Positions 20,101 to 48,802 are shown, counted from the first letter of the stretch. The stretch is DNA of 64,000 bases from Paraphysomonas bandaiensis (GCA_965644295.1 CBFFRP010000119.1:62001-126000); one strand, 5' to 3'. The notes: a model not told the origin generated them from the letters alone. Made by a program: numbers and translations.

Positions 20101-22620
20101 ATATACCCTTTATCTGTTTTCGTTGGCAATCGAATCAAAATATATCTGGCTGCCATGTATGCATCCAGCCAAAATTGCGGTGGCAGTCCAGATTGGATTA
20201 GCATTGCAAGAGTCATCTCTCCAGCAGTTCTGAACTTCCTCTCCTCTATGGCATTCATTTCTGGAGAGTCTGTTGAGCTCCACGTATGTTGATAGCACTC
20301 CTGTGTCCTAAGATACTGACGCAGCTCTTCACTGATTAACTCACCTGCACCATCTGCATGATAGTGCTCCATCTTGAGCTTGTACCTTTTAACATCTCCT
20401 CTAAATAGCTCTTTGAAGACTTCTAAGACCGCTTCCCCAGTTCTGTGGACTAAACCCGTCGCCCAGAACATTTTGCTGGCATGATGCGTTATCTTTAACA
20501 CATACCTCTCACCTCCTCTAGCAGGACAATTTAAGTACACTGCGATATCTGCTGAAAAATTCGGTCTAACGGAATTCTCGTCCTTCGTTCGGAAGCTGAC
20601 TCGGGTTATCTTAGACCTGGCACACACATCACACAAACACTGATTTTTGTGTACCTTGGCTGTGAGGTGTTTTCGTTTCAACCCTGTACCCATGATGAGC
20701 ATCCTCTTATGTGCCTCCACTAAAGCATGTTTGTTGAAGTGACCCGCTCTCCGATGCAGCAACTCCAGCTCGTCCTCACCAGTCCTATCGCTAAGATTTA
20801 CTTCACAATTACTCGGTGTAGACACATCTGGAAGCTCCAACAGCTGCTGAGTTGGAACTGCTGTCATGCCATTCTTCATGGGTCCCTCCAGTACTAGCTC
20901 ACCAGTATTACAATCATATATTTGGATGCCATACCAAACCGTGAATCTATATCCCATTTCGTTCAGCTTACGTCCGGAGCACAGGCATCGATTGATCTGA
21001 TCTGAAATTTCAATGTCTCTCCATGCTCCACGGGAACCCACACTTGTGATATGAATCTCTGATCCCTTCTTAGAGCCGTATATCACCTTTGATGTATTCA
21101 TATGAGTGTCAAGCATGGTCACATCATTCATCAAGAACATTGATGATGAACAGCAGGTGTCAATATATGTATAATGCATGTCATCATTTACACTACATAT
21201 ATTCGTTTCATGTATATTGCATGACAATTTCATAACATCCTCGATCATATTAGCTTCATCTTCATCAGAGAAATCTGCTGGTTCTCCACGCCGTATATTC
21301 TCTACTGTCAGCAACCGTTTGTCCGGCTTCCTACCATGATTCTTCCCTTTCTCTCCTCTTCTAGAATGCTTTTTCTTCGTCGTTGGACAATCAGCAGCAA
21401 GATGTTCCAGAGACTTGCAATTTCTGCATCCCGTGTACTCCGCACTTCCAGGACGCTGCCCTGATATCTCTCCATCCTTCTTCCTCTGCTTCCTCCTGCA
21501 CTGTTCAGTTGAATGGCTATGAGGAATTCCTTCTTTCCTGCAATATCTACAGTTGCCCTTCTTACGCTTATCCCGTTCCGTTCGAGACCGTTTGCTCTTT
21601 TCAATGAAATTCAGCTCCTCCACCTTCTTGCGTTTCCGCTCTAACGCAATCCTTCCAGGAATGGTATCATCATACCGTTCTATCTTCCTTGATAATGTTG
21701 CATAATCAACATCATCAGGCATCAAATACAAAGCAACATTCAGAGGAGCATATTCTTCATTCAACAGACCTTCTCGTAACCGTGTTATTTTTGAGAGCTC
21801 CGATATGTCCTGCTGCTGCTCCTGTAGCTCTTTCAGCAGTATTTCAAACCGTATTATATAGTCCTTCGCAGTCTCCTCCGGACGCATACGGAAAGATCCA
21901 TACTGAGTCAACAGCTCACTGATCTTGTTTTGCTTCCCTCCAGCAAAGCACTTCTTCAACTCATCAATCATAATATGCGCCTTAAACCTGTTGCTTCCTT
22001 TTCCATCAGCCTTGAACCCTTTATGTAGAAGATGGAATTTCTGAAGCGCCTTCGAAGATGTTTGCACTGCCTCTCTGCAGTACGAATACGCTATGGCATT
22101 CGCCTTCCAGTACTTCTTCACAGCCTGTCTGTAAGACTTCTCCTCCATTAACGTGAGTGGCTGTTCCCCAAAGTCGCTTTCCTTCGGTGGTGGCTCCACC
22201 GCTACTTCACTTTGCTCTTTCCTCATGAGGAATGTTTCGAAGTCCTCAATCCATTGTTCAACATTGCTCTCATTAAACTGTGGCACTACTCCTCTATCCT
22301 CCTTCTCTCCTCCTCGCTCGCTACCATGTTGAGAAACGCTCATTTTACACTAGATCACAGAGAGAATTTGTCGTAAGACTAGATAGATTTATTAATATCG
22401 TTTACACGAAGTTGTGATAACCAACACTAACTCATTATAATCCCTGCATAATATCCTACATATGCGAACCTCTCGTTACTGAACATATCTTGAACGATCA
22501 AACTATTTCAGTTTCTCAATATCATCACAGCATTTGTACATCACTATATTTCACTGTATTCTCGTACATTGTCTTGAAGTGACATACTGAATATACTAGA
22601 ATAAGATCCATATTCTAATA
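17114..22620 (-). mobile_element. Copia-2: full-length Ty1/copia LTR retrotransposon
   Basis: 294-bp LTRs at 17114-17407 and 22327-22620, identical by eye; TSD CATCA; PBS TGGTAGCGAG (22326-22317); PPT ATTGAGTGGGAG. Confidence 0.96.
17587..22343 (-). CDS. Copia-2 gag-pol polyprotein with a 1-nt frameshift in RNase H (~17916-17920)
   Basis: 1484-aa ORF with CRNCKSLEHLAADC, HYHADGAGE, YVDD, FSDSDWAG; the RNase H tail (KRSKHIDIKYHWIRE, ADIFTKAL) is in a second frame, 17928-17587. Confidence 0.92.
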
Positions 22621-29419: not shown

Positions 29420-31805
29420 GATCGGGCAGTCCATCATCGATGCACTGTCTTTTTGCGTCCACAAGTGCTTGTTGAAGCAAAAAGGAACAGCAGCAGTTTG
29501 AGGCATCATCGTGAGGTTAATTCTTATCGCAAGTGTGTCATGAATGATAATCAAACTGCTTAAATTGATGCTGTCATCCTCATACAAATATGCTTTTCTT
29601 ATAATCTGTAACAGAATGCCAGTCTAAACAGTCAAAAAGCAAGTGCCAGTAAAATGATCACCATATCCGCCCAAACTATAACACTAAACTATCGCTGTGC
29701 AGTATACGGTCCAAACTATTCGGCCGTCATCTCTTTCATATTTATTACTGATCAGGCGAAGAAACCGTTGTTTGCTACTATTACTTTGATTCACCATCTC
29801 TGCTCATGATGAGTTTGATGGATTCATTCCTCTGATTTCATTGTTTCATTAAGTAAACATTTTTTGTAAACGTGGAAATTTTGCAAAGTTTTAGGAAAAA
29901 CTTGGGGATTTTACAGTATTCATGTAGAAGCGTTTATGTACGACCGTAGTGTTATTGTTAAGCAACGAAAAATACCAGTGTGTAACAGAAGTTGACATTA
30001 TTTATTTGCTAAGGTTTGCTATTTTCAATTGAAAAGATGAAATTATAAACACTACATTCATGATAAACAAAACCGAAGTTGTATTCGATTTACAACTCTA
30101 TAGTGTACAAACCACACACTCACCAACTTCTACTTCAGTTTCATACTACACAATATAATGTACTAATTACATATATATATATATCTTTTGATTTTTATAT
30201 CTAATACTGCACTCAATTGCATATATTATAGAATCTTCAGATCTCAACAGTGTGGTGTGGCACATACAGAGTATGTTTTAAACGAAGCAAATAATAAATC
30301 TTTTTCCCTGTCACAGATTCCCACCTCTCCGTAGCTCCGTAGATGCTGTTAACAATGGACATTTCACTGAAGTTAACTTTGCTCTACGCGTAAACCGTAA
30401 CCTTGCTGTTGAACACAATGCACTTTCAAGTAAGAAATTATGATTATTATTCTGAACACTTCACTACATATTCGTGTAACATATGTTGAAACATCTGTTC
30501 TTATAGCAACATCTGTTTATCATATGTTCATCAGTCAGTTCTATATCTTGTATAGTCACACATCAGTAACTGAATTTAATTCCTTTGTAACTACTATAAT
30601 CACCCGTTACACCTATGAGTTGACTTTACCTATAATTGCACACTGTTAACTCACTTCAATTGCACAATATATATCACATCATATTGCAGAACTCAACACT
30701 CCCACTCAATTGGATGTAGTTAACCATTCTAAAATTTGTGAAGAACATTGCTATCGGATACGCAACCACCGAACCTCATAGGACACTGGTGGACGTATGA
30801 CTCCGCTGGTATATAGCTAGCTCCCACCATTCATTCACCTCTATCTAGTTACGACGAACTCTCTTTTACTCCTACTCCTCAAGAACATCACAACACCCTG
30901 CAACGTCATCACTGCCCACAGAAACGTGTTTATTCTATAAACTGAATACACACAGCAACCTAGGAGCAACGTATAACCGCATACTAATAGTACACCACAT
31001 CCTACGTTTTACTTTCTACCTAAATTCCCTTACAAAAACAATATACCGCCACTTTGGTGCATTTTAGCATTCAAGAACCCAAAATCCCTAATATCCAGGT
31101 TAATACGTAAATACAACCCTGCATACCAGGTATTGCATATCACAATTGATTCCCCACTGAGCCTGGTATGAACACTCGTGCACCTCGAGTATATAAAATC
31201 CATTCTCCGTTGATGTGATATGTACTTGCCCCCCTATAGGGTAGTATGGGTAATGCCAGTACGTATTCCTATGGAAGTATACACTGCAACTGCTACACTG
31301 GAATACTGACCCACATAACTTTATTATAAATTTGTGGCAGGTTTCACATTGCGTGAAGTCACCATCAGCAGATCATAGTGTACATCATCATCGGCAGATA
31401 AAGTGGACATCACACCTGAACGTTGATTCCGTGTGTAGGTACATCATAGCTCATTACCCCATCTTAATGAGTATAACATAGAATATGCATCCTAGACATG
31501 GTATAGGGTCCTGATGATATAATGTTCTTGATATAGATTCCTAAACAAATATCACAGGGTCCTGAATGGGCAATGCATGCAGTTTTGGTACTATAGCCAC
31601 GTAGATAGGGCATAGGAAATGCCACGTGGTCACACTGCCTCCCCCCCTCGTTTTTGTGAGAAATCCATGGTCGCACACATGTCAATGGGACTAGGTTTGA
31701 AATAGCCATCAATACGAACCACCATGGAGTATTATTATCATATTATAGATGTAATTCGGAGAATACTTAAAAATTTCACATCGTAAATTGTAGAGTAGGA
31801 ACACT

Positions 31806-34800
31806 TTATACCGACTGATTAACTTGTGGAAATTTGCTGGCAAATTCCTCGTCTACCAAGACCATTGTAGAAGAATCAAATTCTTTATGGGCAAAACAAT
31901 GGATATGGTAATTATCAAGTCGGAAAGTTTGTTTAGTCATCACATTTTTAGTTGAGAGTATCCGTTTGGAACTTTTATGATACCAATGTGTGAAGACAAA
32001 ACGTGCAACATAAGTAATAAAATGAGAGTCCGGTAACTCCAGGCTTTCATACCACAGGTCCCCGAAAACTCTTAAGTCAACATAAGCCTCATCACCTGGC
32101 TGAAAACTAGTGATAGGCTGCTTACGGATTTTTGCAATATATTCCTTTGCCTCTTTAACCGGATAAATAAGATGATATAAATATCTTTTCCTAGAACAGA
32201 AATCGGCATATGGAATAGAGTCAAAAATATCCTTACTGAATGGAATGTCACGAACATCACCATCCTGAAATTTCACAGTAAAAACTAGAGAGGTTCTGGT
32301 GTCTCTATCACCTCTGTAGTATAGAATTGTGTCAATCACATGCTGTTCATGGTCTCTACAAGCCATGTTATACGCTGTGTCTTGATCACCCGCAAAAAGT
32401 TTAACCTCCCGCACATCGACTTTCACAACTTGTCCTGTCACCAAATGTCTGCAATCAATGTCATTTTTATATTGAGATATGACTTTGAAAGGACCCATAT
32501 AACGGTGAGACATCTTAGGATGGACTTTAGCACCCTTGTCAAACAAAACAAGATCTCCCGGCTGATATCTGTTCTGCTTGTCGGCCGGTATACCTTGGCT
32601 AGCCCGCTCTTGCACAAGACGCTGTTGATAAGCATGCGAAGCTGCCCTGAGCTCACGTAGGTTATCATTAAAACGTTTAAGTCGTGCATGCGCATCCTGG
32701 GAAACAGAGTCGGTGTCCACGTTAAAATAACGCTTATCCTCCGATCCAAAAGTCAACTCGAATGGTGAGAATCCCGTCTCAGATGACACTTCAGAGTTAA
32801 GAATGTGTTGGACACTGGCGATCCAGCTAGGATCTTCAAACACATCTGTGCGCTCTTGACGCTCGCTAGCATCATATACTAGAGCTCGTAGGTGACGAAC
32901 TACCTCACCTATGGTACGTTCTGAGCCATTCGCATGCCGGTTGGCTATACTAAACGTATGGCGCATTCCCATGTATTCCGTTAGCTGCTGGAATAGATCC
33001 GAAGTTAAATCCGGACCCTGGTCTGAAATCACGACGTCAGTGTGACCGTAATAGGACCAATACTTCCAAACAGTATTCGCTAAATTCAAAGCCGTTACTC
33101 CTTTAACTGGTTCCAGAAAAACGAGCTTTGTGTGGAGGTTCACTATCACATTGATATGCGTGTAACCGTCCTTGCCATGTGGAGTAATCTCCACTGCATC
33201 AATAGGTGGTTTTAGGTTGCGCACTATGGGAATAAGTGCTTCCTTCATGGCTAACCGGGTTTTCACGCAAGTTGGACAGTTGGATATATATTCTGCTACC
33301 ACCTGATATGGTATTCCATGCCCTGGAAAACGTTTATTGAGACGAATCCAAGTAGCTTTCCCTCCAAGATGACCCACGCGAGAGTTGTGTACCTCACGCA
33401 AGCATTCTTCACGAGATATATTCATGGAAGGTTGTTCTTGGTCACTGAGATCCAACGGGTCCATAAAATTTCCTAGGAATGAGAAATACTCAGAATCCTG
33501 ACAGTCCTCTCCCAGAAAATAGGCATCATCCCACATAGAATCATCCAAGAACATGCCCGACAAATAGGCCAGTTGGTGTTCCCTGGATAACCAGTCTGCT
33601 AACCAATTCTGTGCTCCAGAAATATGTCGGATTTTAAAATTGAATGATTGCAAGAATATTCTCCATCTAACAATTTTTGGTACCTCTGACGCTTCCATCC
33701 AGAGCAAATTGTTATGGTCTGTTTCTATTGTAAACTGCTTTCCAACTAAGTAATACGCTAGCTGTTTAACCGAATAGTAGATACCGTAGCCCTCCTGCTC
33801 TATAGTAGCCCATTTCATTGCTTGCTCTGAAAACTTTTTAGAGATAAAGGCAATAGGTTGCAATTGAGCTTCTCCTGACGGTAATACCTTCCGTTGTAGT
33901 AGTACAGAACCTATACCTAGCTCACTTGCATCAGTCCGTAAAATCCACTCTAACTCATAATCAGGGTAGAAGAGCTCACACGCATCTTGTAAACCTTTTA
34001 TGAAACGTTTGTACTCAGCTTCATAATCATGACGCCAAGTAGATTTATTCCAATTGAAAGATTTCTTAGTGAGGTCCGTTAAATGACCTACTAAGTCAGA
34101 ATACTTTGGCGTGAAGCTGGAAAAGAAAACTCCCTTGCCTAGCAGAGATCTAGCTTGTTTAGTCGATGATGGCATGGGTATGTTTGCCAAGGCTTCCTTT
34201 TTATCCGGACACACTTCATACGATTTGTGTTTGCACACATATCCAAAAAAATTAACTTTCTTAAAACCAAGCCAGCTCTTAGCCATTTTCAACTTTATGT
34301 TTCTCTCCAGACATCTGTCAATAACTCGTTCCAACTTTTCATAAGCATCCTGGGGATCGTTGGCTAGTATTAGCATATTATCAAAGATAACGATAGCCCA
34401 GTCTGAAAAGTCGGCAAATATCTCCCGAACAACCTCTTGCAGAACACCAGTAGCAGGAGCTATACCCTCTGGCATGAAATTAGGTGCAAACTGTCCCCAT
34501 GGCGTTTGAATGGACAATTTCTCGGAAGTTTCCTCATCTAAAGGTATTTGATGAAACGCATTTGTAAGATCTATATCCAAATAATATGGAAAATTAATGA
34601 TCTTGTCAAGTTCATGTTTGACATTGGGAATAGTGTAGTTTCCCACATGCATGTGATCATTTATCTTAACGTAATCCCCACAAAATCGAATATAAGGAGG
34701 TGTAGCCTTGGGCGCTACTACAAGACAAGAAGCCCATGGCGATCTACTCTTCCGGTAAAAATACCCACACAAACGACGAAATTCTTTCTCTGAGGCTTCC

Positions 34801-35774
34801 CATAGTTTTGGATTAATAGGCCTCGCCTTGGGTTTGATCCGATCCGGAAGTGTATCTTTCCACTTAATTTTTAAAGGTTCAACACCTTTTACACCAGACC
34901 ACTCATCTGGTACAAAGACTTTAACCGCTTTAGTTCGTAGGAGATGCATCACATTTGTTTGTTCCTTCATCTCGCTACTAACATGGGTCTCCAACAACTG
35001 TTCATAGTCTTTTAAAGCTTCCGCTCTAGTCTTTCCTAAGAATACCAAAGCTTCTTTAAATTGAACCGGCAATTCGGAATCCTCTTCTTCCGGTGCAATT
35101 TGAGTACTCGCTTTAGACCATGGTTCCACTATTTGTCCATGCTCTAAACCAGACAAATCATCATGAGTCGAAATCTTCTTGGCATCTGTTTCTATCTCAT
35201 AAGATGTTTGTTCAAAAGCATGCCTCATCAGTTCACACATAAAGGGATATAAAGTACCAGTAAGTGCCGGCAATCCAAGTATGACATCATTATGTTTCAT
35301 GTCAATAATTAGGAAATCCCCTTTGAACTGATACTGTTTTCCATAAGGGTCAGCCAACAAAAGATTGAGTCTGACTCCTTGTGTGACTGTTTTTATAGTA
35401 GTACTATCCGCCAATACTACTCTATGATTCGCATCGTATAAAAATTCGGGGTTTAGCTCTGGCATTAAACTCTCAACCAGACCCCTAGACACATAGTTGG
35501 CTGAAAGCGCTCCCGTATCGCAAAGTACGGTGATCAATTTTTCCGAATTCTCTCTCAAATTATTGTTCATTATTAGCTTAGCTACAGTATGTGCTGATGT
35601 CATTTTTCGCGTATTAGGAAAGCAAGCATACAGCTTAGCTTGCCCCTCGGTTTGCACAGAACACAATGCCGCCGTGAATGTAGACTCTTCAAATTGTAAG
35701 CAACAATCGTCATCCCCGTCACACCCATTAACTACACTGACATCCTGCGCTCCCCGCACGCAATGGTCCTTCCA
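31806..35774 (-). CDS. Gypsy-A pol (PR-RT-RH-IN-chromo-like)
   Basis: LCDTGA protease; RFCGDY, DLTNAFHQI, IFDN RT; TDASELGIG/ETDH RNase H; HHCC and SDQG integrase; chromo-like HVIDTILYYRG..FTVKFQDG. Confidence 0.93.
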   Translation of the reverse strand, partial: WKDHCVRGAQDVSVVNGCDGDDDCCLQFEESTFTAALCSVQTEGQAKLYACFPNTRKMTSAHTVAKLIMNNNLRENSEKLITVLCDTGALSANYVSRGLVESLMPELNPEFLYDANHRVVLADSTTIKTVTQGVRLNLLLADPYGKQYQFKGDFLIIDMKHNDVILGLPALTGTLYPFMCELMRHAFEQTSYEIETDAKKISTHDDLSGLEHGQIVEPWSKASTQIAPEEEDSELPVQFKEALVFLGKTRAEALKDYEQLLETHVSSEMKEQTNVMHLLRTKAVKVFVPDEWSGVKGVEPLKIKWKDTLPDRIKPKARPINPKLWEASEKEFRRLCGYFYRKSRSPWASCLVVAPKATPPYIRFCGDYVKINDHMHVGNYTIPNVKHELDKIINFPYYLDIDLTNAFHQIPLDEETSEKLSIQTPWGQFAPNFMPEGIAPATGVLQEVVREIFADFSDWAIVIFDNMLILANDPQDAYEKLERVIDRCLERNIKLKMAKSWLGFKKVNFFGYVCKHKSYEVCPDKKEALANIPMPSSTKQARSLLGKGVFFSSFTPKYSDLVGHLTDLTKKSFNWNKSTWRHDYEAEYKRFIKGLQDACELFYPDYELEWILRTDASELGIGSVLLQRKVLPSGEAQLQPIAFISKKFSEQAMKWATIEQEGYGIYYSVKQLAYYLVGKQFTIETDHNNLLWMEASEVPKIVRWRIFLQSFNFKIRHISGAQNWLADWLSREHQLAYLSGMFLDDSMWDDAYFLGEDCQDSEYFSFLGNFMDPLDLSDQEQPSMNISREECLREVHNSRVGHLGGKATWIRLNKRFPGHGIPYQVVAEYISNCPTCVKTRLAMKEALIPIVRNLKPPIDAVEITPHGKDGYTHINVIVNLHTKLVFLEPVKGVTALNLANTVWKYWSYYGHTDVVISDQGPDLTSDLFQQLTEYMGMRHTFSIANRHANGSERTIGEVVRHLRALVYDASERQERTDVFEDPSWIASVQHILNSEVSSETGFSPFELTFGSEDKRYFNVDTDSVSQDAHARLKRFNDNLRELRAASHAYQQRLVQERASQGIPADKQNRYQPGDLVLFDKGAKVHPKMSHRYMGPFKVISQYKNDIDCRHLVTGQVVKVDVREVKLFAGDQDTAYNMACRDHEQHVIDTILYYRGDRDTRTSLVFTVKFQDGDVRDIPFSKDIFDSIPYADFCSRKRYLYHLIYPVKEAKEYIAKIRKQPITSFQPGDEAYVDLRVFGDLWYESLELPDSHFITYVARFVFTHWYHKSSKRILSTKNVMTKQTFRLDNYHIHCFAHKEFDSSTMVLVDEEFASKFPQVNQSV

Positions 35775-38700
35775 TCAAGGTCGGGAATCACCGAAGCGAT
35801 CCCTTCTCAAGATAGAAGTTGGATTGGATCTACCAGTGGAACCATCCTCAGCTTTCAGGAAAGCATTGAGCTTATCCCTCATCTCAACAGCCGAGGTTCT
35901 CAAGCACTGAGAATTGTGGTTGTATTTGCACTGTGGCTTGTTGCATTTCCCGTACAACATCTGCCTCAGGCAACCGAATTTCTCAACTCTCGAACTCGTA
36001 TCACCAGCAGGTTTATCCTGAGAAGAAGCCATAAAAGAAACCTCTTGCTCATTAACAACTGCTGTGGGATCAGGTTCCAGATCCTGCGATGATGTAACGT
36101 CCTTGGCTGAGCCACGACGTAAATCAATGTTACCCTCTTCATCATCTGAAGAACTAGGGTATTCGAGATTTATCTGCTCCGGACCTCGATCAAAATCCGA
36201 ATCATCAGAAACATATCCATCAATGTGAGTGAGAGCATGTGAATCTCTGTTATTCCGATGATCATAGTCCTTGTAAGAAGTAGACCGCATCGGAGACGGA
36301 TGTTTCTCATTATTCTTGGAAAACAAATCCCTTTTCCGTTTGTTGTACTCATCAAGTTTGTTTTTAGCCTCAATGTTAGCCTCAAACGGTAACTGACGAG
36401 CTGCTAAGCAAATCTGATAATGATCTACTAAAATAGCCGTAAATTCATCGAAGAACTCGTTCATCGTGTCAAACTGTAGTTTATTCATGCACCCAAAGAC
36501 ATAACGAACATAATCCCTATCGTTCAAGTTTTTGAATAGTCTTACGAGCCCATATTCTTTGTCATCTACTCTTGGACACCAATCCTTATTAAACTCCAAC
36601 ATAATGGATAACATGGTTCGAAACAAATCAATAAGTTTCAACTGTTGGAAGTAAAACTGTTCGAACGTGACAGTTGTCACTTTCCTCCACTCCATAATCT
36701 TTATGTGTCTAAGAGAATCTCGTAGCTCCTCATAGAATCCCACACAATTAAAAACCCGAGTTTCTTTGGCTATTACACGCAGTAAGTCGGACAAATCCAT
36801 CTCTGAAATCTCCGCATGACCGAGATGATATACTTCTCTTAGATGATCTCTTAATTCTCCAGAAACAACCTTTTGTAGACGCACAGTGGTCTGTTCCTCT
36901 TCTTGAAAATCCAAGATTTGTTTGACAGCTCTAGCCACTTTAGAAAGCTTAAGTTCATTGATACGAATATAACAACACCCGGTTTGATAACCAGGGTGTT
37001 GGCTCGTAAACAATAAAACTACAATAACACCTACACTGAACCAACAAAGAACAGTAATAACGGTATTATTATTAAAACACTTTTCCAAGTCTAGACCTAA
37101 ACTTAGTTAGTGACTCCCGCAAAGAGCCACCGCGCAATGGTATACCGCCGGCACCCAAGATCACTAGCACCAAGCTTTGGTCTAACTTAAAACAAGTGAT
37201 AAACACCATAGAAGCATATATGCACACACACACACTCCTAACATGGTACAACACACGTGGTGTCATCACACCACCACAGGTTGCGTAACTCTTCAATCAA
37301 AACTGAAAAATACACAGCAACCTGATAGGGAGTGACTCACCAGCATATGCCGAGAGTACACCGTATACTACGTATCTATACCCTACCAGAGACTGAAAAC
37401 CCCCTAATCCAGGAAATACATAAATACGGTACGTATAGTACGTATAGTACGCACACCACATTTGCAATCGAACCCCAATAAGCCTTGCATAAACACTCGT
37501 GCACCTCAAGTGTACAATAGCGACTTCTCTCTTATGATGGTCACATGTACTTGCCCCCCTATAGGGTAGTACGGGTAATACATGTATGTATGTATATGGA
37601 AGTATATACTGCAACTGCTATACAGGAATACGGGCCCACATAACTTTGATATAAATTTGCAGCAGGTTTCACATCGACCGAAGTCACCAGCAGCAGATCA
37701 TAGTCGTACATCATCATCAGCAGATAAAATTGGACATCATACCCGAACGTTGGCTCAATATGTAGGTACACTGTGGTACATTACCAATGTCCAAATGGTG
37801 TTGCATAATATGTATCCTGAACACAATGAAGGTCCTAAAGCAATATATAGGGTCCTGATATAGGGTCCTAAACCAACATAGGGTCCTAAAAGTCAATGTA
37901 ACCATGCATGTGACTCAATAGCGTGATACTATAGCCACGTAGATAGGGCATGGGAAATGCCACGTGGTCACACTGCCTCCTCCCCCGTTTTGGTTGTCTA
38001 CAGAATAGCATGCCTCCGGTATTCACAAATGCCAACGGGACTAGGTGTTACGTAGCCGTCAAAACGAAAATCCCCGGAGAATTATAAGTTATATAATAAT
38101 AATTTGATATGGAATAGAATTGAGAGAGCAATAAGAATAATATGTGTCTAGCGTGGAACTTAATAAGACGCACGGACCTGAGGATATTTGTTGGCAAAAT
38201 CCTCGTCCACGAGTACCATTGTGCTAGCATTCACCTCGGAATGAACAAAGCAATGCACTAGGTAATTATCATAACGGTAGGTACGGAGAGTGAGAAGATC
38301 CTTCACCGATAAAACCCGCTTAGAGCTCTTGTGATACCAGTGTGTGAACTGGATAGGAGCTACATAAGTAATGAGATGAGAATCTGGTAATTCCAACTCA
38401 TCGTACCAAGCATCACCATAAATTCGCAAATCAACATAGGCTAGATCACCAGGTTGAAACTGAGTGATCGGTTGCCGGCGGAAATCCGCGATGTATTTCT
38501 TTGCATAGTCAGCAGTATAAATAAGATGGTAAAGATATCGTTTTCGAGAACAAAATTCAGCATAAGGAACAGAATCAAAAATATCCTTGCTGTAAGGAAC
38601 TTCTCGGACATCTCCATCTTGAAAACGCACAGTGAAAACCATGGTAGATCGAACCTCTCTATCACCACGATAATAAAGAATTTCATCAATAACATGTTGA

Positions 38701-41700
38701 TCCTGATCGCGTAAAGCCATTTTATAAGCAGTATCAGAATCTCCCGGAAACAATTTAACATCGCTCACGGAAACACGAACCACTTGCCCAGTGGCGAGAT
38801 GTTGACAATCTACGTCATTCTTGTATTGGGACTTGACTGAGAAAGGTCCCATATACCGGTGAGACATCTTAGGATGAACCTTTGCCCCTTTGTCAAATAA
38901 GACAAAATCTCCCGGTTGATACCTATTCTGTCTATCGGGATGCACACCTGTTCCTGCCCTCTCCGTGGCTAACTTTTGCTGATAAGCTTTGGAAGCCTCT
39001 CGGAGTTGGGCTAACTGATCATTAAGCGCAGTGAGTCGAGCATGCGCCCGATCTGGAAGGTCTTTGAGATCCATGTTCAAATAGTCAAGATCCTTTGAGC
39101 CAAACGTCAACTCAAAAGGCGAAAATCCTGTTTCCGAAGACACTTCAGAATTTAGAAGATATTGAACACTTGCTAACCAACTAGGGTCCTCAAAGATGTC
39201 TTTTCGTTCCTCCCGTTCACTGTAATCATAGACCAGAGCACGTAGATGTCGAACTACTTCTCCAATAATTCTTTCACATCCATTTGCATGGCGATTGGCA
39301 ATACTAAAAGTGTGCCGAACACCCATGTACTCCGTCAACTGTTTGAACAAATCTGAAGTCAAATCCGGTCCTTGATCCGAGATTATTAGATCGGTGTGAC
39401 CGTAATGACTCCAGTATTTCCATATAGTATTTGCAAGATTAAGAGCCGTCACACCTTTGACAGGTTCAAGGTACACAAACTTGGTGAAAAGATTGACCAC
39501 CACGTTGATATGTGTATATCCCTCTGCACCGTGAGGTGTAATCTCAACAGCATCTATACCAATCGCGCTACGAGCATTTGGGGGCTTGAGATTTCGTACG
39601 ATCGGAATAAGAGCCTCCTTCATAGCCAACCTCGTTTTCACACAATTTGGGCACTTAGAGATATAATCCTCAACAACCTTGTAAGGAATATTATGACCCG
39701 GGAACTCTTTGTTTAAGCGTATCCAGGTAGCCCTTCCCCCCATGTGTCCAACTCGCGCGTTATGAACCTCACGCAACGCCGTCTCCGGTGATACATGAGA
39801 TGTTGGAGGGTCCCCAATCTCTCGATCATCCGGGTTCATAAAGTTACCCAGAAAGTTAAAGTACTCATACTCATTACAGTCATCCCCCATGAAATAGGCG
39901 TCATCATATTCCTCCTCTGGGAATATTCCAGAGAGTATAGCAACCTGATGCTCTCTAGATAACCAGTCCGCCAACCAATTCTTGGCACCAGATATATGAC
40001 GAATGCTGAAGTTGAAAGACTGCAAGAATATCCTCCATCGTGTAATCTTTGGAACATCCGAAGATTCCATCCACAATAAATTGTTATGGTCGGTCTCAAT
40101 TGTGAATTGCTTGCCTATTAAGTAATAAGCCAAGTGTTTAACACTGTAGAAAATTCCATATGCCTCTTGCTCTATAGTTGACCACTTCTGAGCTTGGGCA
40201 GAAAACTTTTTGGAAATGAAAGCTATAGGCTGCCACTGTATGCTCCCATCCTCTAATATTTTCTTTTGCAATAACACTGAACCTATTCCCAACTCACTAG
40301 CGTCAGTACGCAATGTCCACTCAAGATTATAATCCGGATAAAACAGCTCACAAGCGTCTTGTAGTCCAGCAATGAAACGACGATACTCTGCCTCGTAGTC
40401 ATGCCGCCATGTGGACTTATCCCAATTGAAACTCGACTTTGTCATGTCAGTCAAGTGAGCAACTAAATCAGAGTATCTAGGCGTAAAACTAGAAAAGAAT
40501 ACCCCTTTACCCAGCAACGATCTGGCCTGTTTGGTGTTAGTAGGCATTGGAATCTTGCCGAGAGCCTCCTTCTTATCGGGATTAACCTCATATGACTTGT
40601 GACGGCAAACATATCCAAAGAAATCCACCTTTCTAAACCCCAACCAGCTTTTTGGCATCTTAAGTTTCACATTCCTTTCAATACATCTGTCAATGATCTT
40701 CTCGAACTTCTCATAAGCATCCCTGGCATCATTAGCCAATATAAGCATGTTATCGAAAATGACTATGGCCCACTCAGAGAAATCATCGAATATTTCTCTC
40801 ACAGTTTCCTGTAAAACACCCGTGGCCGGAGCAATACCCTCTGGCATGAAATTAGGAGCAAATTGCCCCCAAGGCGTCTGAATTGATAGGCGCTCAGAAG
40901 TTTCATCATCTAATGGAATTTGATGAAAAGCATTTGTTAAATCTATATCCATGTATAGCGGAAAGTTGATAATCTTGTCCAACTCATGCTTAACATTAGG
41001 AATCGTATAATTTCCCACTTCCATGTGCTTGTTAATTTGCACATAGTCACCACAAAAACGGATGTATGGAGGAGTGGCTTTGGGAGCAACCACTAGGCAT
41101 GAAGCCCAAGGAGACCGACTCTTTCGGTAGAAATAGCCACACAGTCGCCGAAACTCCTTCTCCGAAGCCTCCCACAGCTTAGGATTGATCGGGCGAGCCT
41201 TTGGTTTCATTCGGTCCGGGAGAGTGCTTTTCCATTTTAGAGACAAAGGGTCCACACCTCTCACACCGCTCCATTCGTCAGGCACGAACACTTTTTCAGC
41301 CTTCGTTGACAACAATTCCATAATCTTAGTTTCACTTTTCATTTCATCGCTGACATGAGTCTCTATCTGCTCATGATAGTCTTGGAGGGCTTCCTCCCTA
41401 GACTTTCCTAAGAATGTCAACGCATCCTTGAATTGAACCGGTAACTCAGTTTCCTCATCCTCTGGGGCAATAGCATCACTCGCTCTTGACCATGGGTGCA
41501 CACGGTCATCAGAGTCAACCGTGTCCCCTGCCAGAGATGACAACACATTCGAATTTTCATTATCGGAGACACCCTCGATTTGAGTGTCATGTGCCTCACG
41601 CATAACAGCACACATGAAAGGATATAATTTCCCAGTCAGCGCAGGCAACCGAAGGCAACAGACAACAAGCCCAGAGAATCAAGCCCAAAGAAGCGTGTCG

Positions 41701-43398
41701 CAGTTAGTTTCTTATAAGAGTGTGAAACAACAGCGCAAAGACAGAAATTTCTGTACGAGCAGTAAAGTAAATATTTACTATAACAACACCCGGTTTGATA
41801 ACCAGGGTGTTGGCTCGTAAACAATAAAACTACAATAACACCTACACTGAACCAACAAAGAACAGTAATAACGGTATTATTATTAAAACACTTTTCCAAG
41901 TCTAGACCTAAACTTAGTTAGTGACTCCCGCAAAGAGCCACCGCGCAATGGTATACCGCCGGCACCCAAGATCACTAGCACCAAGCTTTGGTCTAACTTA
42001 AAACAAGTGATAAACACCATAGAAGCATATATGCACACACACACACTCCTAACATGGTACAACACACGTGGTGTCATCACACCACCACAGGTTGCGTAAC
42101 TCTTCAAAACTGAAAATACACAGCAACCTGATAGGGAGTGACTCACCAGCATATGCCGAGAGTACACCGTATACTACGTATCTATACCCTACCAGAGACT
42201 GAAAACCCCACAATCCAGGAAATACATAAATACGGTACGTATAGTACGTATAGTACGCATACCACATTTGCAATCGAACCCCAATAAGCCTTGCATAAAC
42301 ACTCGTGCACCTCAAGTGTATAATAGCGACTTCTCTCTTATGATGGTCACATGTACTTGCCCCCCTATAGGGTAGTACGGGTAATACATGTGTGTATGTA
42401 TATGGAAGTATATACTGCAACTGCTATACAGGAATACGGGCCCACATAACTTTGATATAAATTTGCAGCAGGTTTCACATCGACCGAAGTCACCAGCAGC
42501 AGATCCTAGTCGTACATCATCATCAGCAGATAAAATTGGACATCATACCCGAACGTTGGCTCAATATGTAGGTACCCTGTGGTACATTACCAATGTCCAA
42601 ATGGTGTTGCATAATATGTATCCTGAACACAATGAAGGTCCTAAAGCAATATATAGGGTCCTGATATAGGGTCCTAAACCAACATAGGGTCCTAAAAGTC
42701 AATGTAACCATGCATGTGACTCAATAGCGTGATACTATAGCCACGTAGATAGGGCATGGGAAATGCCACGTGGTCACACGAACTTTGCAAGTTCTTTCCT
42801 CACGCATTACAACAGTCTGTTGCACATTTGGAAGGTTGGCATTCTTTTTCAATTCCCTGAACAGCTTCCCAGGTTTCTTGCCTCCTAACAGAGCTTGAGT
42901 TCTAGTAGGGAATTCAGAAGCCACCTGCTGATCACCATCCTCCTCAGCATTACCATTTGACTGAGCAGTAGAAGTATCTTCCTCCTCCAACAATTCTCTT
43001 ACAGATTCATCCCGCCAAGGAGTGCGATAGTGCTCCGCCAGATTATGCAGAGTAGAGTATCTCCTTGTATCACGTTTCTTTACCGGTTTCGGTAACGTGT
43101 CAGGAACTGTAGGTGTTCCTTTCGTAACTGTTTCATCCGCCCCTGGGATATTTTGATCTTCCCTTAAAATCGTGGGGCTTTGCGCTCTAGAGCCGACAGG
43201 TGTACCTCTACGTGAGGCTCGCTCTTCGAGTCGCGTGACTCTCAACGTTAAGTCATCTATTCTCGTATCGAATTTCCTTTCCAAGGCATCGAAACGTGCA
43301 AGAATGATTTCGAGCATTGAAGGCTCTAGATCCTCCTTAACACTGCCTTCAGAACCAGAGTGGCTCTTAGGGCTACTCCTACCAACAGGAGTTTGCAT
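35775..43398 (-). CDS. Gypsy-A gag, split by Gypsy-B (43398-42779 + 36963-35775)
   Basis: Removing Gypsy-B and one CGAA copy restores the frame ..EERTCKVR|INELKLSK..; coiled-coil N-terminus; CCCH-type motif near the C-terminus. Confidence 0.85.
36968..42778 (-). mobile_element. Gypsy-B: sister-family element lacking gag and most of the protease, inserted in Gypsy-A gag
   Basis: LTRs 36968-37972 and 41779-42778; TSD CGAA (36964-36967, 42779-42782); PPT GGGGGAGGAGGCAG; the 5' leader joins directly to LPALTG at ~41648. Confidence 0.93.
38160..41648 (-). CDS. Gypsy-B truncated pol (RT-RH-IN-chromo-like), uninterrupted 1162 codons
   Basis: Colinear with Gypsy-A pol from LPALTG onward; same IFDN motif; intact integrase segment NARSAIGIDAV. 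Confidence 0.92.
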   Translation of the reverse strand: MPALTGKLYPFMCAVMREAHDTQIEGVSDNENSNVLSSLAGDTVDSDDRVHPWSRASDAIAPEDEETELPVQFKDALTFLGKSREEALQDYHEQIETHVSDEMKSETKIMELLSTKAEKVFVPDEWSGVRGVDPLSLKWKSTLPDRMKPKARPINPKLWEASEKEFRRLCGYFYRKSRSPWASCLVVAPKATPPYIRFCGDYVQINKHMEVGNYTIPNVKHELDKIINFPLYMDIDLTNAFHQIPLDDETSERLSIQTPWGQFAPNFMPEGIAPATGVLQETVREIFDDFSEWAIVIFDNMLILANDARDAYEKFEKIIDRCIERNVKLKMPKSWLGFRKVDFFGYVCRHKSYEVNPDKKEALGKIPMPTNTKQARSLLGKGVFFSSFTPRYSDLVAHLTDMTKSSFNWDKSTWRHDYEAEYRRFIAGLQDACELFYPDYNLEWTLRTDASELGIGSVLLQKKILEDGSIQWQPIAFISKKFSAQAQKWSTIEQEAYGIFYSVKHLAYYLIGKQFTIETDHNNLLWMESSDVPKITRWRIFLQSFNFSIRHISGAKNWLADWLSREHQVAILSGIFPEEEYDDAYFMGDDCNEYEYFNFLGNFMNPDDREIGDPPTSHVSPETALREVHNARVGHMGGRATWIRLNKEFPGHNIPYKVVEDYISKCPNCVKTRLAMKEALIPIVRNLKPPNARSAIGIDAVEITPHGAEGYTHINVVVNLFTKFVYLEPVKGVTALNLANTIWKYWSHYGHTDLIISDQGPDLTSDLFKQLTEYMGVRHTFSIANRHANGCERIIGEVVRHLRALVYDYSEREERKDIFEDPSWLASVQYLLNSEVSSETGFSPFELTFGSKDLDYLNMDLKDLPDRAHARLTALNDQLAQLREASKAYQQKLATERAGTGVHPDRQNRYQPGDFVLFDKGAKVHPKMSHRYMGPFSVKSQYKNDVDCQHLATGQVVRVSVSDVKLFPGDSDTAYKMALRDQDQHVIDEILYYRGDREVRSTMVFTVRFQDGDVREVPYSKDIFDSVPYAEFCSRKRYLYHLIYTADYAKKYIADFRRQPITQFQPGDLAYVDLRIYGDAWYDELELPDSHLITYVAPIQFTHWYHKSSKRVLSVKDLLTLRTYRYDNYLVHCFVHSEVNASTMVLVDEDFANKYPQVRASY

Positions 43399-44776
43399 CT
43401 TCCACCTTAGTTGCTGTTACACTCTTTAGTTTATATACCCACACGATTTTTCACCTCAGAGTTACGCAGCTCCCTTGGCTTCAGAGACTAACAAAGATCG
43501 ACAAGGAGGGAATTAAAAATTCGCTCACAGGTCTCAATGAAATAACTCAAATCCAGTCCCCAGTCCCCCGGAAGAAACTGACAAATCCACAGACCTGCGT
43601 AAGAATCCACCAAGACACCAAGACACCACTCAACACACTGACACAAGACACCCCTGCACAACGCACACAAGCAAGGCACACAGACAGGTCTATCTAAATG
43701 ATGTGTATCAAGAATTAATCACAAGAATTCTTGTGCGAGCAAATAAGTAAATATTTACTATGACGTAACCCGGTTTGATAACCAGAATCACGGCTCGCAG
43801 TACAGGTATAGCACACAAACACGCAAGTGTGAAAACAATGTATAATTAATTATGTTTTGACTGCTCTAGGAAAAACCTAATGCTCAGTAAATGATACCCG
43901 CCAAGTATCACCACGCAAGGAACACCGCCAGTGCAACAACATCGTTGGCACCAAGCACTTCGGTTAAGCCTAAACAAGTACATAACACCATAGCATACAT
44001 GTTACACCCACTCCTACTCCTCAAGAACATCACAACACCCTGCAACGTCATCACTGCCCACAGAAACGTGTTTATTCTATAAACTGAATACACACAGCAA
44101 CCTAGGAGCAACGTATAACCGCATACTAATAGTACACCACATCCTACGTTTTACTTTCTACCTAAATTCCCTTACAAAAACAATATACCGCCACTTTGGT
44201 GCATTTTAGCATTCAAGAACCCAAAATCCCTAATATCCAGGTTAATACGTAAATACAACCCTGCATACCAGGTATTGCATATCACAATTGATTCCCCACT
44301 GAGCCTGGTATGAACACTCGTGCACCTCGAGTATATAAAATCCATTCTCCGTTGATGTGATATGTACTTGCCCCCCTATAGGGTAGTATGGGTAATGCCA
44401 GTACGTATTCCTATGGAAGTATACACTGCAACTGCTACACTGGAATACTGACCCACATAACTTTATTATAAATTTGTGGCAGGTTTCACATTGCGTGAAG
44501 TCACCATCAGCAGATCATAGTGTACATCATCATCGGCAGATAAAGTGGACATCACACCTGAACGTTGATTCCGTGTGTAGGTACATCATAGCTCATTACC
44601 CCATCTTAATGAGTATAACATAGAATATGCATCCTAGACATGGTATAGGGTCCTGATGATATAATGTTCTTGATATAGGTTCCTAAACAAATATCACAGG
44701 GTCCTGAATGGGCAATGCATGCAGTTTTGGTACTATAGCCACGTAGATAGGGCATAGGAAATGCCACGTGGTCACA

Positions 44777-47553
44777 CTTTACCTTGGGTACCTCTGCGAT
44801 AATTTGTGCAGTAGTCTTAAATTTTTCCCCAAGATTTCGCTCCCTCTGTTCAATGAATATTGGACCACTCAAAGCCTTGGTATATATATCAGCCATCTGT
44901 TGTCGACTGCTCACATGAATTAATTTCGCTGTATTAAACTGTTCGGGATCCACATGCTCTCTAATCATATGATACTTAATCTCAATATGTTTCGATCGTT
45001 GATGTTGCACTGGATTTTCCGATATATCCTGAGCACTTTGACTATCCAGGAATAATGGTGTGGGCTCGTCAATTTTCAATCCTACTTCACCAGTCACCCC
45101 CCGAGACCATATCATTTCCTGTAATCCATTATATAAGCATTGATACTCTGCTTGCATAGTCGATGTAGCTACAGTAGACTGAAGTTTGGAACCCCACGAT
45201 AGTGGTCCACCAGCTCCAAACATAACATAACCTGAAGTTGATCTCCTCGTCAACGGGTCACCCGCCCAGTCAGCATCCGTGAACATATGAAGATCAAAAT
45301 CTTTCCCTCTATATTGAATGCCTTTTTCCGTAGTACCTCGTACATACTGCATTAAATGTATCATTAGTTTACATACAGTGATATTCACTTTCGTTGAGAA
45401 TCGTGACAATACTCCCACTGCATATGATATATCCGGCCTTGTATTCATAGATAAATAGAGTAACGCTCCTATTAGTGGACGATAGGGAAAATTGTCAACT
45501 AGTTCCTGCTCTTCAGTCGAATGCACATGTTCCACTCCCACTTTGATCCTATCCATGACATCACTAGGTAGTGGGTATCGCCGAGTCTTGTCCCTTGGAC
45601 CCAGAAAGTCCACATACTTCGCCAATACCTTTTTGATGTACACTGTCTGGTCAAGTTTGAGACAATTCTGAGTTCTCGTCACTCTCACGTTCAAAAACTG
45701 GCCAATCTCATTCATATCTGTAATATCGAACCTTTCACATATACTCGTCGCTTAATTTCCAAAATAATACTCGTATCTCGACATGCTATCAGCATATCAT
45801 CTACATATATTACTAACAGAACTACTAATTCACCCCTGATCCGTGTAAAATATAAACATGGGTCAAGTATACATGATATAAAATGTAAGGACTTATACCA
45901 TGACCGTGGTGAGCTTCGAAGACCATATAAACTTTTCTTCAGTTTAAAGCAATATCCTGGTGGCAATTTGAAATCTGGTGTTGCATACTTATACACACAT
46001 CTCCTTTTATATCTGCATATACAAGAATGCATTAGATACGTCGAGTTGATGCACCACCATATTCATAACAAACGCGATAGCTAATAGCAATCTTACTGTT
46101 ACCGCTTTTACCACTGGAGTATAATTGTTGGCTCTACCAACCTCATGGCCTCCGCATTCAAGTACCACAAGTCTTGCTTTCTATCGTGGAATCGCACCCT
46201 CCTTGTTGCGTTTCAAAGCAAAGACATACTCAGGATTCAAATTGCAGTGACACTGGGGTAGGGATGATGGGCTTAACTTCCATTACTTCCCTTCGTTCCA
46301 GTCTGTCACGCTCAGCCTGTCTTGCTGTCAATGGAGTGACTCTGGGGTAGGTATGGGCTTAACTTCCATTACTTCCCTTCGTTCCAGTTCGTCACATTCA
46401 GCCTGGCTGAACTCCATTGCTTCCGTTCCGGCAACTCCAAGGATTCGGAATATGTCTGAGGCACCTTAGGTCCCGCTGACGAGCACCAGATGGAATCTGC
46501 CTCCTCTAGTAGGCTGCACTCCACTTCGTCACACGAAGGTAATACGTGCTTCTCCCCTACTACTGACACATTCGTCACCACCCTTGGAGCCCTTGTGCGC
46601 CTGCCCCTAGTTGAGCGATCTGATGGAGCTTCCTCTCCCGGAGCACTTACGAAGTCAGAAGGGGATGGAACCGTCCCAGTCAACTGCTGTAATAAATGTC
46701 CGCTGGTCCCGTCGTCACGAGATCCAGAACTAGCAGATACTCTTGTCACAAGGTCTTCACTCATCCGCGATGATGTGAATAGGAGTCTTAACTTCCAGTT
46801 GCTCCTCACCACCTGACATCAGGGATCTATATCCCACAGTTAGACCTCTTTCCGAATCTATATTCGCGTGGTCTTGTTGTACAGTTGGCCGCCATCTTCA
46901 CATGGGTTTTGTCGATTAAGTAATCGAAGTCTCTAATATTTCGTTCCTGAGGATCCACAGCAACCATGGCCTCGTCCATTTCTCGATAATAATCAGCCGA
47001 TTTCTCGATAATAATCCGCCGATCTCTCAGGCACAGATTCATCGAATAAAACATGCACAGACGTAACTATAGTATCTCCAATCAATACTTGGTATCCCAT
47101 TTGCTCCTCTGGGAACCCTACAAAGTATCCAGTCTGTGCCTTTTCTTCCCAGTCTTTCCTGCGATCTGCCTTCGGGATGAGAACGTATGCCTTGCACCCC
47201 CATTTCCGTAACCAAGAAAAATCTGGCACCGTTCCTCCAGGAACACACTCGTAGGGTGACATCCACCCTCTATAGGTCTTTGTGGGTAATCTTCTAAGAA
47301 CCCAGCATGCATGTCTAAAGGCTTTCCACCACTCCGCTTTTGGCATACCCGATGACAATAAAAGTGATAATGTCATTTCTCCTAGTGTCCTGAATTTCCG
47401 TTCTGAAACACCGTTTAATTCTGGTGTCTCCCTAGTAGTGTAGGAGAATGTGGTTCCAAATTTTTGTAACAAGTATTCTTTGATTCGCCTGTCCATCAAC
47501 TCTGGTCCACCATCAGCATGGTACTGCTGTATCCTGTTCCACCCTGGGTATTT
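44777..47553 (-). pseudogene. Copia-3 left arm: integrase-RT-RNase H with frameshifts and small duplications; continues at 30866-30699
   Basis: QYHADGGPE, ELNGVSERKFRT, LKKSLYGLRSSP, YVDD, FTDADWAG, RSKHIEIKYH; local duplications at ~46247-46404 and ~46979-47022. Confidence 0.88.
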
Positions 47554-48802
47554 TGGTAGCGAGTGGTAGCACTGAAGATACGAAGGAGGACAACAAGGTG
47601 CTGAAGTTCGACAAGTATCAGGCGGAGGCGTCTGCTCAAAAAATTAGGATTCATTTGGAAATTAAGCGACGAGTATATGTGAAAGGTTCGATATTACAGA
47701 TATGAATGAGATTGGCCAGTTTTTGAACGTGAGAGTGACGAGAACTCAGAATTGTCTCAAACTTGACCAGACAGTGTACATCAAAAAGGTATTGGCGAAG
47801 TATGTGGACTTTCTGGGTCCAAGGGACAAGACTCGGCGATACCCACTACCTAGTGATGTCATGGATAGGATCAAAGTGGGAGTGGAACATGTGCATTCGA
47901 CTGAAGAGCAGGAACTAGTTGACAATTTTCCCTATCGTCCACTAATAGGAGCGTTACTCTATTTATCTATGAATACAAGGCCGGATATATCATATGCAGT
48001 GGGAGTATTGTCACGATTCTCAACGAAAGTGAATATCACTGTATGTAAACTAATGATACATTTAATGCAGTATGTACGAGGTACTACGGAAAAAGGCATT
48101 CAATATAGAGGGAAAGATTTTGATCTTCATATGTTCACGGATGCTGACTGGGCGGGTGACCCGTTGACGAGGAGATCAACTTCAGGTTATGTTATGTTTG
48201 GAGCTGGTGGACCACTATCGTGGGGTTCCAAACTTCAGTCTACTGTAGCTACATCGACTATGCAAGCAGAGTATCAATGCTTATATAATGGATTACAGGA
48301 AATGATATGGTCTCGGGGGGTGACTGGTGAAGTAGGATTGAAAATTGACGAGCCCACACCATTATTCCTGGATAGTCAAAGTGCTCAGGATATATCGGAA
48401 AATCCAGTGCAACATCAACGATCGAAACATATTGAGATTAAGTATCATATGATTAGAGAGCATGTGGATCCCGAACAGTTTAATACAGCGAAATTAATTC
48501 ATGTGAGCAGTCGACAACAGATGGCTGATATATATACCAAGGCTTTGAGTGGTCCAATATTCATTGAACAGAGGGAGCGAAATCTTGGGGAAAAATTTAA
48601 GACTACTGCACAAATTATCGCAGAGGTACCCAAGGTAAAGAGAGTTCGTCGTAACTAGATAGAGGTGAATGAATGGTGGGAGCTAGCTATACCAGCGGAG
48701 TCATACGTCCACCAGTGTCCTATGAGGTTCGGTGGTTGCGTATCCGATAGCAATGTTCTTCACAAATTTTAGAATGGTTAACTACATCCAATTGAGTGGG
48801 AG
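47554..48802 (+). pseudogene. Copia-3 right arm: PBS, start of gag, large deletion, RT C-terminus/RNase H, PPT
   Basis: TGGTAGCGAG at 47554-47563; gag-like STEDTKEDNKVLKFDK; from ~47654 it is the near-exact reverse complement of 45763-44777 + 30866-30699; ORF 47702-48658. Confidence 0.88.

Follow-up and report, generated by a model that had tools for sequence, protein, structure and literature searches.

A Ty3/gypsy-type clade represented in Paraphysomonas bandaiensis with Asn in place of the second aspartate of reverse transcriptase motif C

Introduction

All reverse transcriptases (RTs) are said to carry three conserved aspartates, two of which are located in the YxDD motif (PMC2148107). 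In this study, we examined a 64,000-nucleotide stretch of DNA from Paraphysomonas bandaiensis (GCA_965644295.1 CBFFRP010000119.1:62001-126000; hereafter the window, with positions counted from its first letter), in which two nested long terminal repeat (LTR) retrotransposons, Gypsy-A and Gypsy-B, encode RTs with IFDN at the place of YxDD. An earlier note on this DNA had proposed that they represent a recently mobile lineage using a two-aspartate RT active site with compensatory changes.

The effects of losing the second aspartate of motif C have been described for yeast elements. Polymerase activity of Ty3 RT depends on D151 and D213 (PMC5371799, reviewing Bibillo et al. 2005). The Ty3 mutants D214N and D214E remain active, though less processive, and transposition is abolished in the mutants of all three residues (PMC5371799). 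The D211N mutant of Ty1 still polymerises, with a 223-fold reduction in kpol and a preference for Mn2+, and its transposition is blocked; this block is partly rescued by RNase H suppressors (PMC2148107).

The same change is also found in nature. YVDN is the natural motif of nematode belpaoviruses, including Cer7-Cer13 of C. elegans and Atlas virus of Ancylostoma ceylanicum, whose activity, according to the authors, still had to be tested (PMC554778, PMC9094657). The Asp-to-Asn change is therefore less novel than the earlier note took it to be. Our literature search returned no description of it in motif C of a Ty3/gypsy element, nothing joining IFDN with reverse transcriptase or retrotransposon, and nothing joining gypsy, diatom and YXDD.

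The elements of the window share several features with these systems. Ty3 of Saccharomyces cerevisiae (4OL8) is the best match in sequence and fold among solved structures, and has the same protease-RT-RNase H-integrase order, LTRs, short target-site duplication (TSD) and polypurine tract, as well as the motif A Asp and the first motif C Asp. However, Ty3 carries YLDD, PFG and T-L-D where the present clade carries IFDN, PEG and D-I-D. The nematode Belpaoviridae, likened here on motif C alone, are also LTR elements with intact frames in which the second motif C Asp is replaced by Asn, and the replacement is treated as a lineage trait. They differ in belonging to the BEL/Pao family, in their animal hosts and in keeping the Tyr (YVDN versus IFDN). 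Engineered Ty1 D211N has the same residue change and keeps its polymerase chemistry in vitro (PMC2148107), but this mutant is immobile without suppressors, whereas Asn is the wild type state of the present clade, which has many intact copies, some of them recently inserted. Finally, the diatom Ty3/gypsy group GyDi (PMC2806351) and the 'Gypsy environmental clades' GEC1/GEC2 of Tara Oceans plankton (PMC5029228) stand apart from reference gypsy clades, and our clade resembles them in its occurrence in marine metagenomes and metatranscriptomes. They were compared by description only, and neither paper mentions the catalytic motif; GyDi or GEC1/GEC2 may be the present clade under another name.

Results

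Motif C of Gypsy-A and Gypsy-B

We found that WAIVIFDNMLILA is read in the pol frames of both Gypsy-A and Gypsy-B on the minus strand. Translation of window:34341-34430 gave VREIFADFSDWAIVIFDNMLILANDPQDAY for Gypsy-A, with the core stretch DWAIVIFDNMLILAND, and translation of window:40713-40802 gave VREIFDDFSEWAIVIFDNMLILANDARDAY for Gypsy-B, with the core stretch EWAIVIFDNMLILAND. Coding of these two intervals on the plus strand was ruled out by stops in the translation. The codon strings for IFDN are ATCTTTGATAAT in Gypsy-A and ATTTTCGATAAC in Gypsy-B, which confirms from the DNA the earlier report of synonymously different codons. The coordinates given for the motif also proved correct (Table 1), and RFCGDY and the shifted motif B, MPEGIAPATGVLQ, which had been claimed for both elements, are present in both pol open reading frames (ORFs).

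To place the motif, we aligned the Gypsy RT to solved structures with phmmer. The top match was Ty3 RT (4OL8, E 6.5e-24), in which 'vylddilifs' pairs with 'vifdnmlila' of the Gypsy RT; in the RT of cauliflower mosaic virus (CaMV), motif C pairs with 'cvyvddilvfs'. The motif is ungapped in both alignments, indicating that IFDN occupies the position of Ty3 YLDD and CaMV YVDD, with I for Y, F for x, D for D and N for the last D, that is, a change of Tyr to Ile and of the second Asp to Asn. Thus, motif C lacks the canonical [Y/F]xDD, while D397, the catalytic Asp of motif A, and D460, with which the aspartates of motif C begin, are both in place.

The affinity to Ty3 was found at the level of sequence, profile and fold, among solved structures only. 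A profile of 41 clade members matched Ty3 RT best (E 1.2e-45) and CaMV RT with E 7e-31. The AlphaFold model of the 271-amino-acid (aa) RT domain had a mean predicted local distance difference test score of 92.2 and put F-D of motif C at a beta-hairpin turn (strands 166-169 and 172-177). Foldseek with this predicted fold ranked Ty3 RT first, at an RT identity of ~24-25%. In addition, gypsy-type RNase H and zinc-finger models of Pfam match the elements. The pol of BEL/Pao elements has a Pao-type peptidase A17 and a BEL/Pao integrase tail. A Pfam scan of the Gypsy pol gave gypsy-type models only and no Pao peptidase, and the best structural relative was Ty3.

A clade with Asn in motif C

We then evaluated how widely this motif occurs in databases. 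A word-indexed search, an exhaustive HMMER search over 1.84 billion cluster representatives and a further search started from a divergent member together gave 345 related RTs. All three motifs were aligned in 342 of these relatives (38-100% identity, outgroup aside), on which the motif counts are based. The fourth residue of motif C is Asn in 340/342 relatives, far more than chance would give; the first Asp of motif C is kept in 341/342 and the motif A Asp in 340/342. The motif C variants are IFDN (268), LFDN (30), LHDN (12), IHDN (7), IYDN (7), MFDN (6) and a few others.

Two further positions near the active site distinguish the clade from Ty3 and CaMV. Motif B, which is P-F-G in both of these, has Glu as its middle residue (P-E-G) in 340/342 relatives, and the full PEG is found in 331/342. 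The residue two before the motif A Asp, which is Thr in Ty3 and Ser in CaMV, is Asp or Glu in 335/342 (D 326, E 9) and Asn in 5/342.

Two aligned sequences, P0266 and P0287, lack the Asn, and the motif B Glu is absent from the same two and from no others. P0266 is a canonical DD outgroup with 26% identity, and P0287 is a fragment with IMDG. Together with P0360, P0287 forms a tiny lineage on short metagenome contigs, 42% identical to the pol of Gypsy-A, whose motifs A, B and C read D-I-D, PFG and IMDG, respectively. This lineage could represent decay or, alternatively, an intermediate state.

An alignment of 264 pol sequences was used to examine the other catalytic sites. Motif A D395-I-D397, the RNase H residues D610/E656/D681/D722, the integrase HHCC and the integrase residues D854/D913/E947 are all >=97% invariant. 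By this alignment, the RNase H and integrase catalytic sets of the clade are canonical.

The exhaustive search found 378 clusters (50% identity) at E <= 1e-30 and 15,845 at E <= 1e-10, and we took the 378 as a rough clade size. The relatives come mostly from marine metagenome and assembly contigs. Among them, we found no RT with DD at >=38% identity to the pol of Gypsy-A. Searches for a canonical sister of the clade, seeded with P0281 and P0287, gave clade members or fragments only, and all but one of the best 150 representative matches listed are inside the clade. Pfam RVT_1 scores on the clade RTs are weak (35-57 bits), and the precomputed annotation of some relatives lacks RVT_1. This suggests that surveys may undercount or misclassify IFDN RTs.

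The polyproteins of the clade come in two sizes, ~1,300 aa for pol by itself (the Gypsy-A type) and ~1,700-2,100 aa for what is apparently a gag-pol fusion, indicating that the gag-pol junction varies among the branches. We also observed a sub-branch with LHDN or LFDN (P0305-P0311, P0317, P0321 and P0322), whose ~1,760-2,080-aa polyproteins carry an N-terminal Exo_endo_phos domain (apurinic/apyrimidinic endonuclease-like) in addition to RT, RNase H and integrase. In P0305, Exo_endo_phos spans residues 103-398, RVT_1 802-937 and rve 1297-1382. An LTR-type pol does not usually combine an endonuclease with an integrase.

Copies in the genome

To examine the lineage in its own genome (62.5 Mb, 669 contigs), we searched it with the 271-aa RT domain of Gypsy-A. 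At least 144 matches were found, of which ~60 (counted from the table of matches) lie in stop-free frames of 1,281-1,395 aa. All 50 copies that were read (50/50), from families ranging from 100% down to 48% aa identity to Gypsy-A, carry IFDN, or LFDN in one family, and the four residues are written in nine codon spellings. Between the RTs of Gypsy-A and Gypsy-B, the proportion of nonsynonymous differences (pN) is 0.084 and that of synonymous differences (pS) is 0.95, at which synonymous sites are saturated; a like pattern was seen in every family pair tested.

These comparisons point to strong purifying selection on the RT, and on the Asn in particular, since Asp is only one transition away. 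The earlier note had attributed the motif to selection instead of decay or read error and had called for a check of Asn invariance, substitution rates and an RT tree. The check was run, and both the invariance in deep genome families and database relatives and the low pN against saturated synonymous sites agree with that claim. A FastTree tree built from 202 RT-RNase H sequences placed the families of the P. bandaiensis genome at three or more deep positions within the clade. The genome thus holds several old lineages with the motif C Asn, each with intact copies.

The copies also bear marks of recent movement. Six are 100% identical over the 271-aa RT query, and five of these lie in open frames of 1,322-1,328 aa. 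Along with the TSDs, the near-identical LTRs and the exact empty site described below, these copies uphold the claim of recent mobility. Gypsy DNA is present in marine metagenomes. In addition, marine metatranscriptome contigs match stretches of gag and pol with 95-100% identity; the matched stretches include 34303-34605, which spans the motif, and no mismatch was listed at 34377-34388. Taken together, Gypsy-A and Gypsy-B are two members of a large, old and probably still active Ty3/gypsy-type clade.

Structure of the nested elements

Self-comparison of the window and reading of the ends identified two nested LTR elements, with Gypsy-B inside the gag of Gypsy-A (Table 1). Gypsy-A has LTRs with a short TSD, gag before pol, the protease-RT-RNase H-integrase order and a polypurine tract, as Ty3/gypsy elements do. 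Its LTRs are 768 bp long and 99.87% identical (self-comparison over 769 bp), in agreement with the near identity claimed before. The intact TSDs, also claimed before, were recovered at 4 bp each once the LTR ends had been shifted by 1-2 bases. In the empty-site paralogue, 48620-48660 matches the two flanks exactly, with a single CTTT between them, and this is proof that Gypsy-A arrived by genuine integration. The flanks themselves (30346-30866 and 44777-45771) are an inverted duplicate, 99.6-99.7% identical, of the contiguous segment 47646-49155.

Table 1. Coordinates of the features described in this study (window positions, unless a contig is given)
Feature	Position	Strand	Basis
RT motif C of Gypsy-A, I458-F459-D460-N461, replaces YxDD	34377..34388	-	translation and alignment to Ty3/CaMV
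RT motif C of Gypsy-B, IFDN	40749..40760	-	translation
RT motif A of Gypsy-A, D395-I-D397; D397 = catalytic Asp (Ty3 D151), D395 = clade-specific extra Asp (Ty3 Thr, CaMV Ser)	34569..34577	-	alignment to Ty3 and CaMV
RT motif B of Gypsy-A, P430-E431-G432; PFG in Ty3 and CaMV	34464..34472	-	alignment
Gypsy-A, complete LTR retrotransposon, ~8.1 kb without nested Gypsy-B	30867..44776	-	LTR pair; ends set by flanks and empty-site paralogue
TSD of Gypsy-A, CTTT, left copy	30863..30866	.	flank reading
TSD of Gypsy-A, CTTT, right copy	44777..44780	.	flank reading
3' LTR of Gypsy-A (minus strand TGTGAC...GGAGTA)	30867..31634	-	self-comparison, end reading
5' LTR of Gypsy-A	44009..44776	-	self-comparison, end reading
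Polypurine tract of Gypsy-A, minus strand AAAACGAGGGGGGGAGGC, adjoins 3' LTR upstream	31637..31654	-	sequence reading
pol of Gypsy-A, 1,317 aa: protease, RT, RNase H, integrase, C-terminal ~330 aa without assignment	31806..35759	-	Pfam and motif reading
gag of Gypsy-A, 3' part, CCCH-like zinc knuckle	35775..36967	-	ORF and Pfam
gag of Gypsy-A, 5' part, beyond Gypsy-B insertion	42783..43398	-	ORF 42721-43398
Gypsy-B, 5.8 kb, internally deleted: no gag, protease mostly gone; nested in Gypsy-A gag	36968..42778	-	self-comparison, end reading
TSD of Gypsy-B, CGAA	36964..36967 (left), 42779-42782 (right)	.	flank reading
LTRs of Gypsy-B, ~1,000 bp, 98.8% identical	36968..37972 (3'), 41779-42778 (5')	-	self-comparison, end reading
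pol of Gypsy-B, 1,162 aa, begins within protease; RT 87% identical to Gypsy-A	38160..41648	-	ORF, Pfam
Empty-site paralogue of Gypsy-A insertion point, in inverted duplicate of flanking repeat	48637..48640	.	both flanks joined with one CTTT
Further gypsy-type groups of the genome	G000:C168:117282-119036, C1:180098-181798, C119:138319-141669, C476:3859-6996		RVT_1/rve scans

In the pol of Gypsy-A, the protease motif LCDTGALS is located near residue 80, and Pfam assigned RVT_1 to residues 379-507, RT_RNaseH to 600-706, Integrase_H2C2 to 783-834 and rve to 853-940; two gypsy-type RNase H models match. The last 331 aa after the integrase (31809-32801, minus strand) are conserved, with G1089, P1090 and G1150 near-invariant in the clade, and a weak SH3_Tf2-1 hint is the sole Pfam signal. 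A chromodomain, the mark of chromoviruses, was sought in these 331 aa with Pfam at E <= 1, and no Chromo match was found.

The gag and pol of Gypsy-A lie in the same frame with one TGA between them (35745-35790, minus strand; ...DRFGDSRP*WKDHC...). This single stop in a common frame implies stop-codon read-through, not frameshifting. The knuckle of gag is CCCH-like, not CCHC. The listed gag ORF reaches 37088 because its reading frame enters the LTR of Gypsy-B. We also found that contigs from other sequencing runs join 36967 straight to the sequence at 42783 (loose ends), indicating that copies of Gypsy-A without Gypsy-B exist. Gypsy-B is a derivative that has lost gag and most of the protease, not an autonomous copy, and must therefore have been moved in trans.

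Other elements of the genome and the window

Scans with RVT_1 and rve identified four further gypsy-type groups in the genome, each with RT then integrase in one long frame. Their RVT_1 scores, stronger than those of the IFDN clade, are 104, 95.6, 73 and 64 bits, with frames of 1,912, 1,614, 1,526 and 1,947 aa, respectively. The 95.6-bit group (1,614-aa frames) carries YLDD, as read by a degenerate DNA pattern at C1:180434 and C58:33534, and has ~30 copies among the matches listed. For the 104-bit group (1,912-aa frame), a degenerate pattern search of contig C25 for [Y/F]xDD followed by three NTN codons gave no match at the expected place.

The window is rich in transposable elements. Two Ty1/copia-type polyproteins are encoded at 5871-9956 and 17889-22343 on the minus strand, with RVT_2 scores of 225 and 187 bits, and a copia-type codon string for YVDDMLI is located at 45788-45807 (minus strand), near the right flank of Gypsy-A. 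Host-type long frames without obvious introns encode a UAA transporter (13250-14578), a hydrolase (15925-16827) and a WD40 protein (53290-54900).

Discussion

The best explanation of these results is that Gypsy-A is an autonomous element and Gypsy-B a deleted derivative, and that the RT of their clade carries a fixed, selected change of the motif C hairpin from YxDD to [I/L/M][F/H/Y]DN. Judging from sequence, we put the probability that this is an active, self-sufficient RT of an autonomous lineage, working with two aspartates and an Asn, at about 0.8.

In such an enzyme, D397 of motif A and D460, the first Asp of motif C, would be retained as the metal-binding carboxylates, which are indispensable in Ty3 RT. 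N461 would stand at the dispensable third position and support the site without charge. The loss of turnover or processivity that is lethal to yeast elements would be offset by coupled changes found across the clade, for which E431 in the P-x-G of motif B and D395, two before the motif A Asp, are the clearest candidates. In addition, the aromatic residue of the hairpin stands at position 2 instead of position 1, which may be a further coupled change. Of the two-aspartate RT with compensatory changes proposed in the earlier note, the correlated active-site changes (PEG and the extra motif A Asp) do exist; the supporting role of the Asn and the compensation by E431 and D395 are what we infer, the latter from co-occurrence alone.

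Several points weigh against this explanation. The polymerase activity of the IFDN enzyme is a prediction from sequence. The same single Asp-to-Asn change abolishes the transposition of both Ty1 and Ty3 (PMC2148107, PMC5371799). Intact YLDD gypsy-type elements of the same genome could in principle supply RT. Likewise, the metatranscriptome contigs are compatible with transcription of Gypsy-A and do not prove it, because DNA can be present in RNA libraries.

A tentative alternative is that the third carboxylate was relocated. Here, the metal would be bound by Glu431 (motif B) or Asp395 (motif A) instead of the lost Asp, and the site would have three carboxylates, not two, in a new geometry. Both residues are clade-specific (F and T in Ty3, F and S in CaMV) and nearly invariant, and the two sequences that lack the Asn, P0266 and P0287, are exactly those that lack the Glu. 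However, this Asn-Glu correlation comes from two sequences, one of them an outgroup, and the nine relatives with Glu and five with Asn at the position two before the motif A Asp suggest that Asp is not strictly required there. If the catalytic centre was rebuilt in this way, with the third metal-site carboxylate passed from motif C to Glu431 (or Asp395), which the sequences make possible but less likely than not, the clade would have a retroelement polymerase that binds metal and nucleotide in a different geometry and that probably differs in metal preference, fidelity or processivity. This rebuilt centre would have diversified into several hundred 50%-identity clusters, mostly from marine samples.

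It is quite unlikely that the IFDN RT is dead, copied in trans by the YLDD RTs of the same genome and kept as an RT-like scaffold for RNase H or particle assembly. The immobility of the yeast mutants would fit a dead enzyme, the ~30 listed copies of the 1,614-aa YLDD group coexist with the clade, and Gypsy-B shows that defective copies of the lineage can move in trans. Yet a scaffold needs no invariant motif A Asp, first motif C Asp, motif B and FFGY over 38-100% identity, and the Asn is fixed even though a single transition would turn it into Asp. The earlier note had counted closely related YxDD helpers as grounds for doubt. Intact YLDD elements are indeed there, but they are not close kin of Gypsy-A: among RTs more closely related than the Pfam level, none has DD. 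Moreover, the clade is found on many, mostly marine, contigs, and the same helper cannot be assumed there. Decay, assembly error or read error in the two copies, for which nothing speaks but the prior expectation that YxDD is invariant, is refuted by the long open frames, the genome- and database-wide invariance, the synonymous variation and the agreement of independent sequencing runs on the sequence.

The Asp-to-Asn change has probably occurred independently, by convergence, in the Gypsy clade and in the nematode BEL/Pao elements, because the Gypsy clade is gypsy-type by its domain models, its best structural relative and its fold. A second, probably independent case beside nematode YVDN makes the question a comparative one. 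The state that stops Ty1 and Ty3 transposition is the wild type of a clade with at least several hundred 50%-identity clusters, many of them with intact frames and some recently mobile. This clade is thus a natural, deeply sampled answer to the question of which changes make a two-aspartate RT viable, and its PEG and D-x-D signature provides direct targets for mutagenesis.

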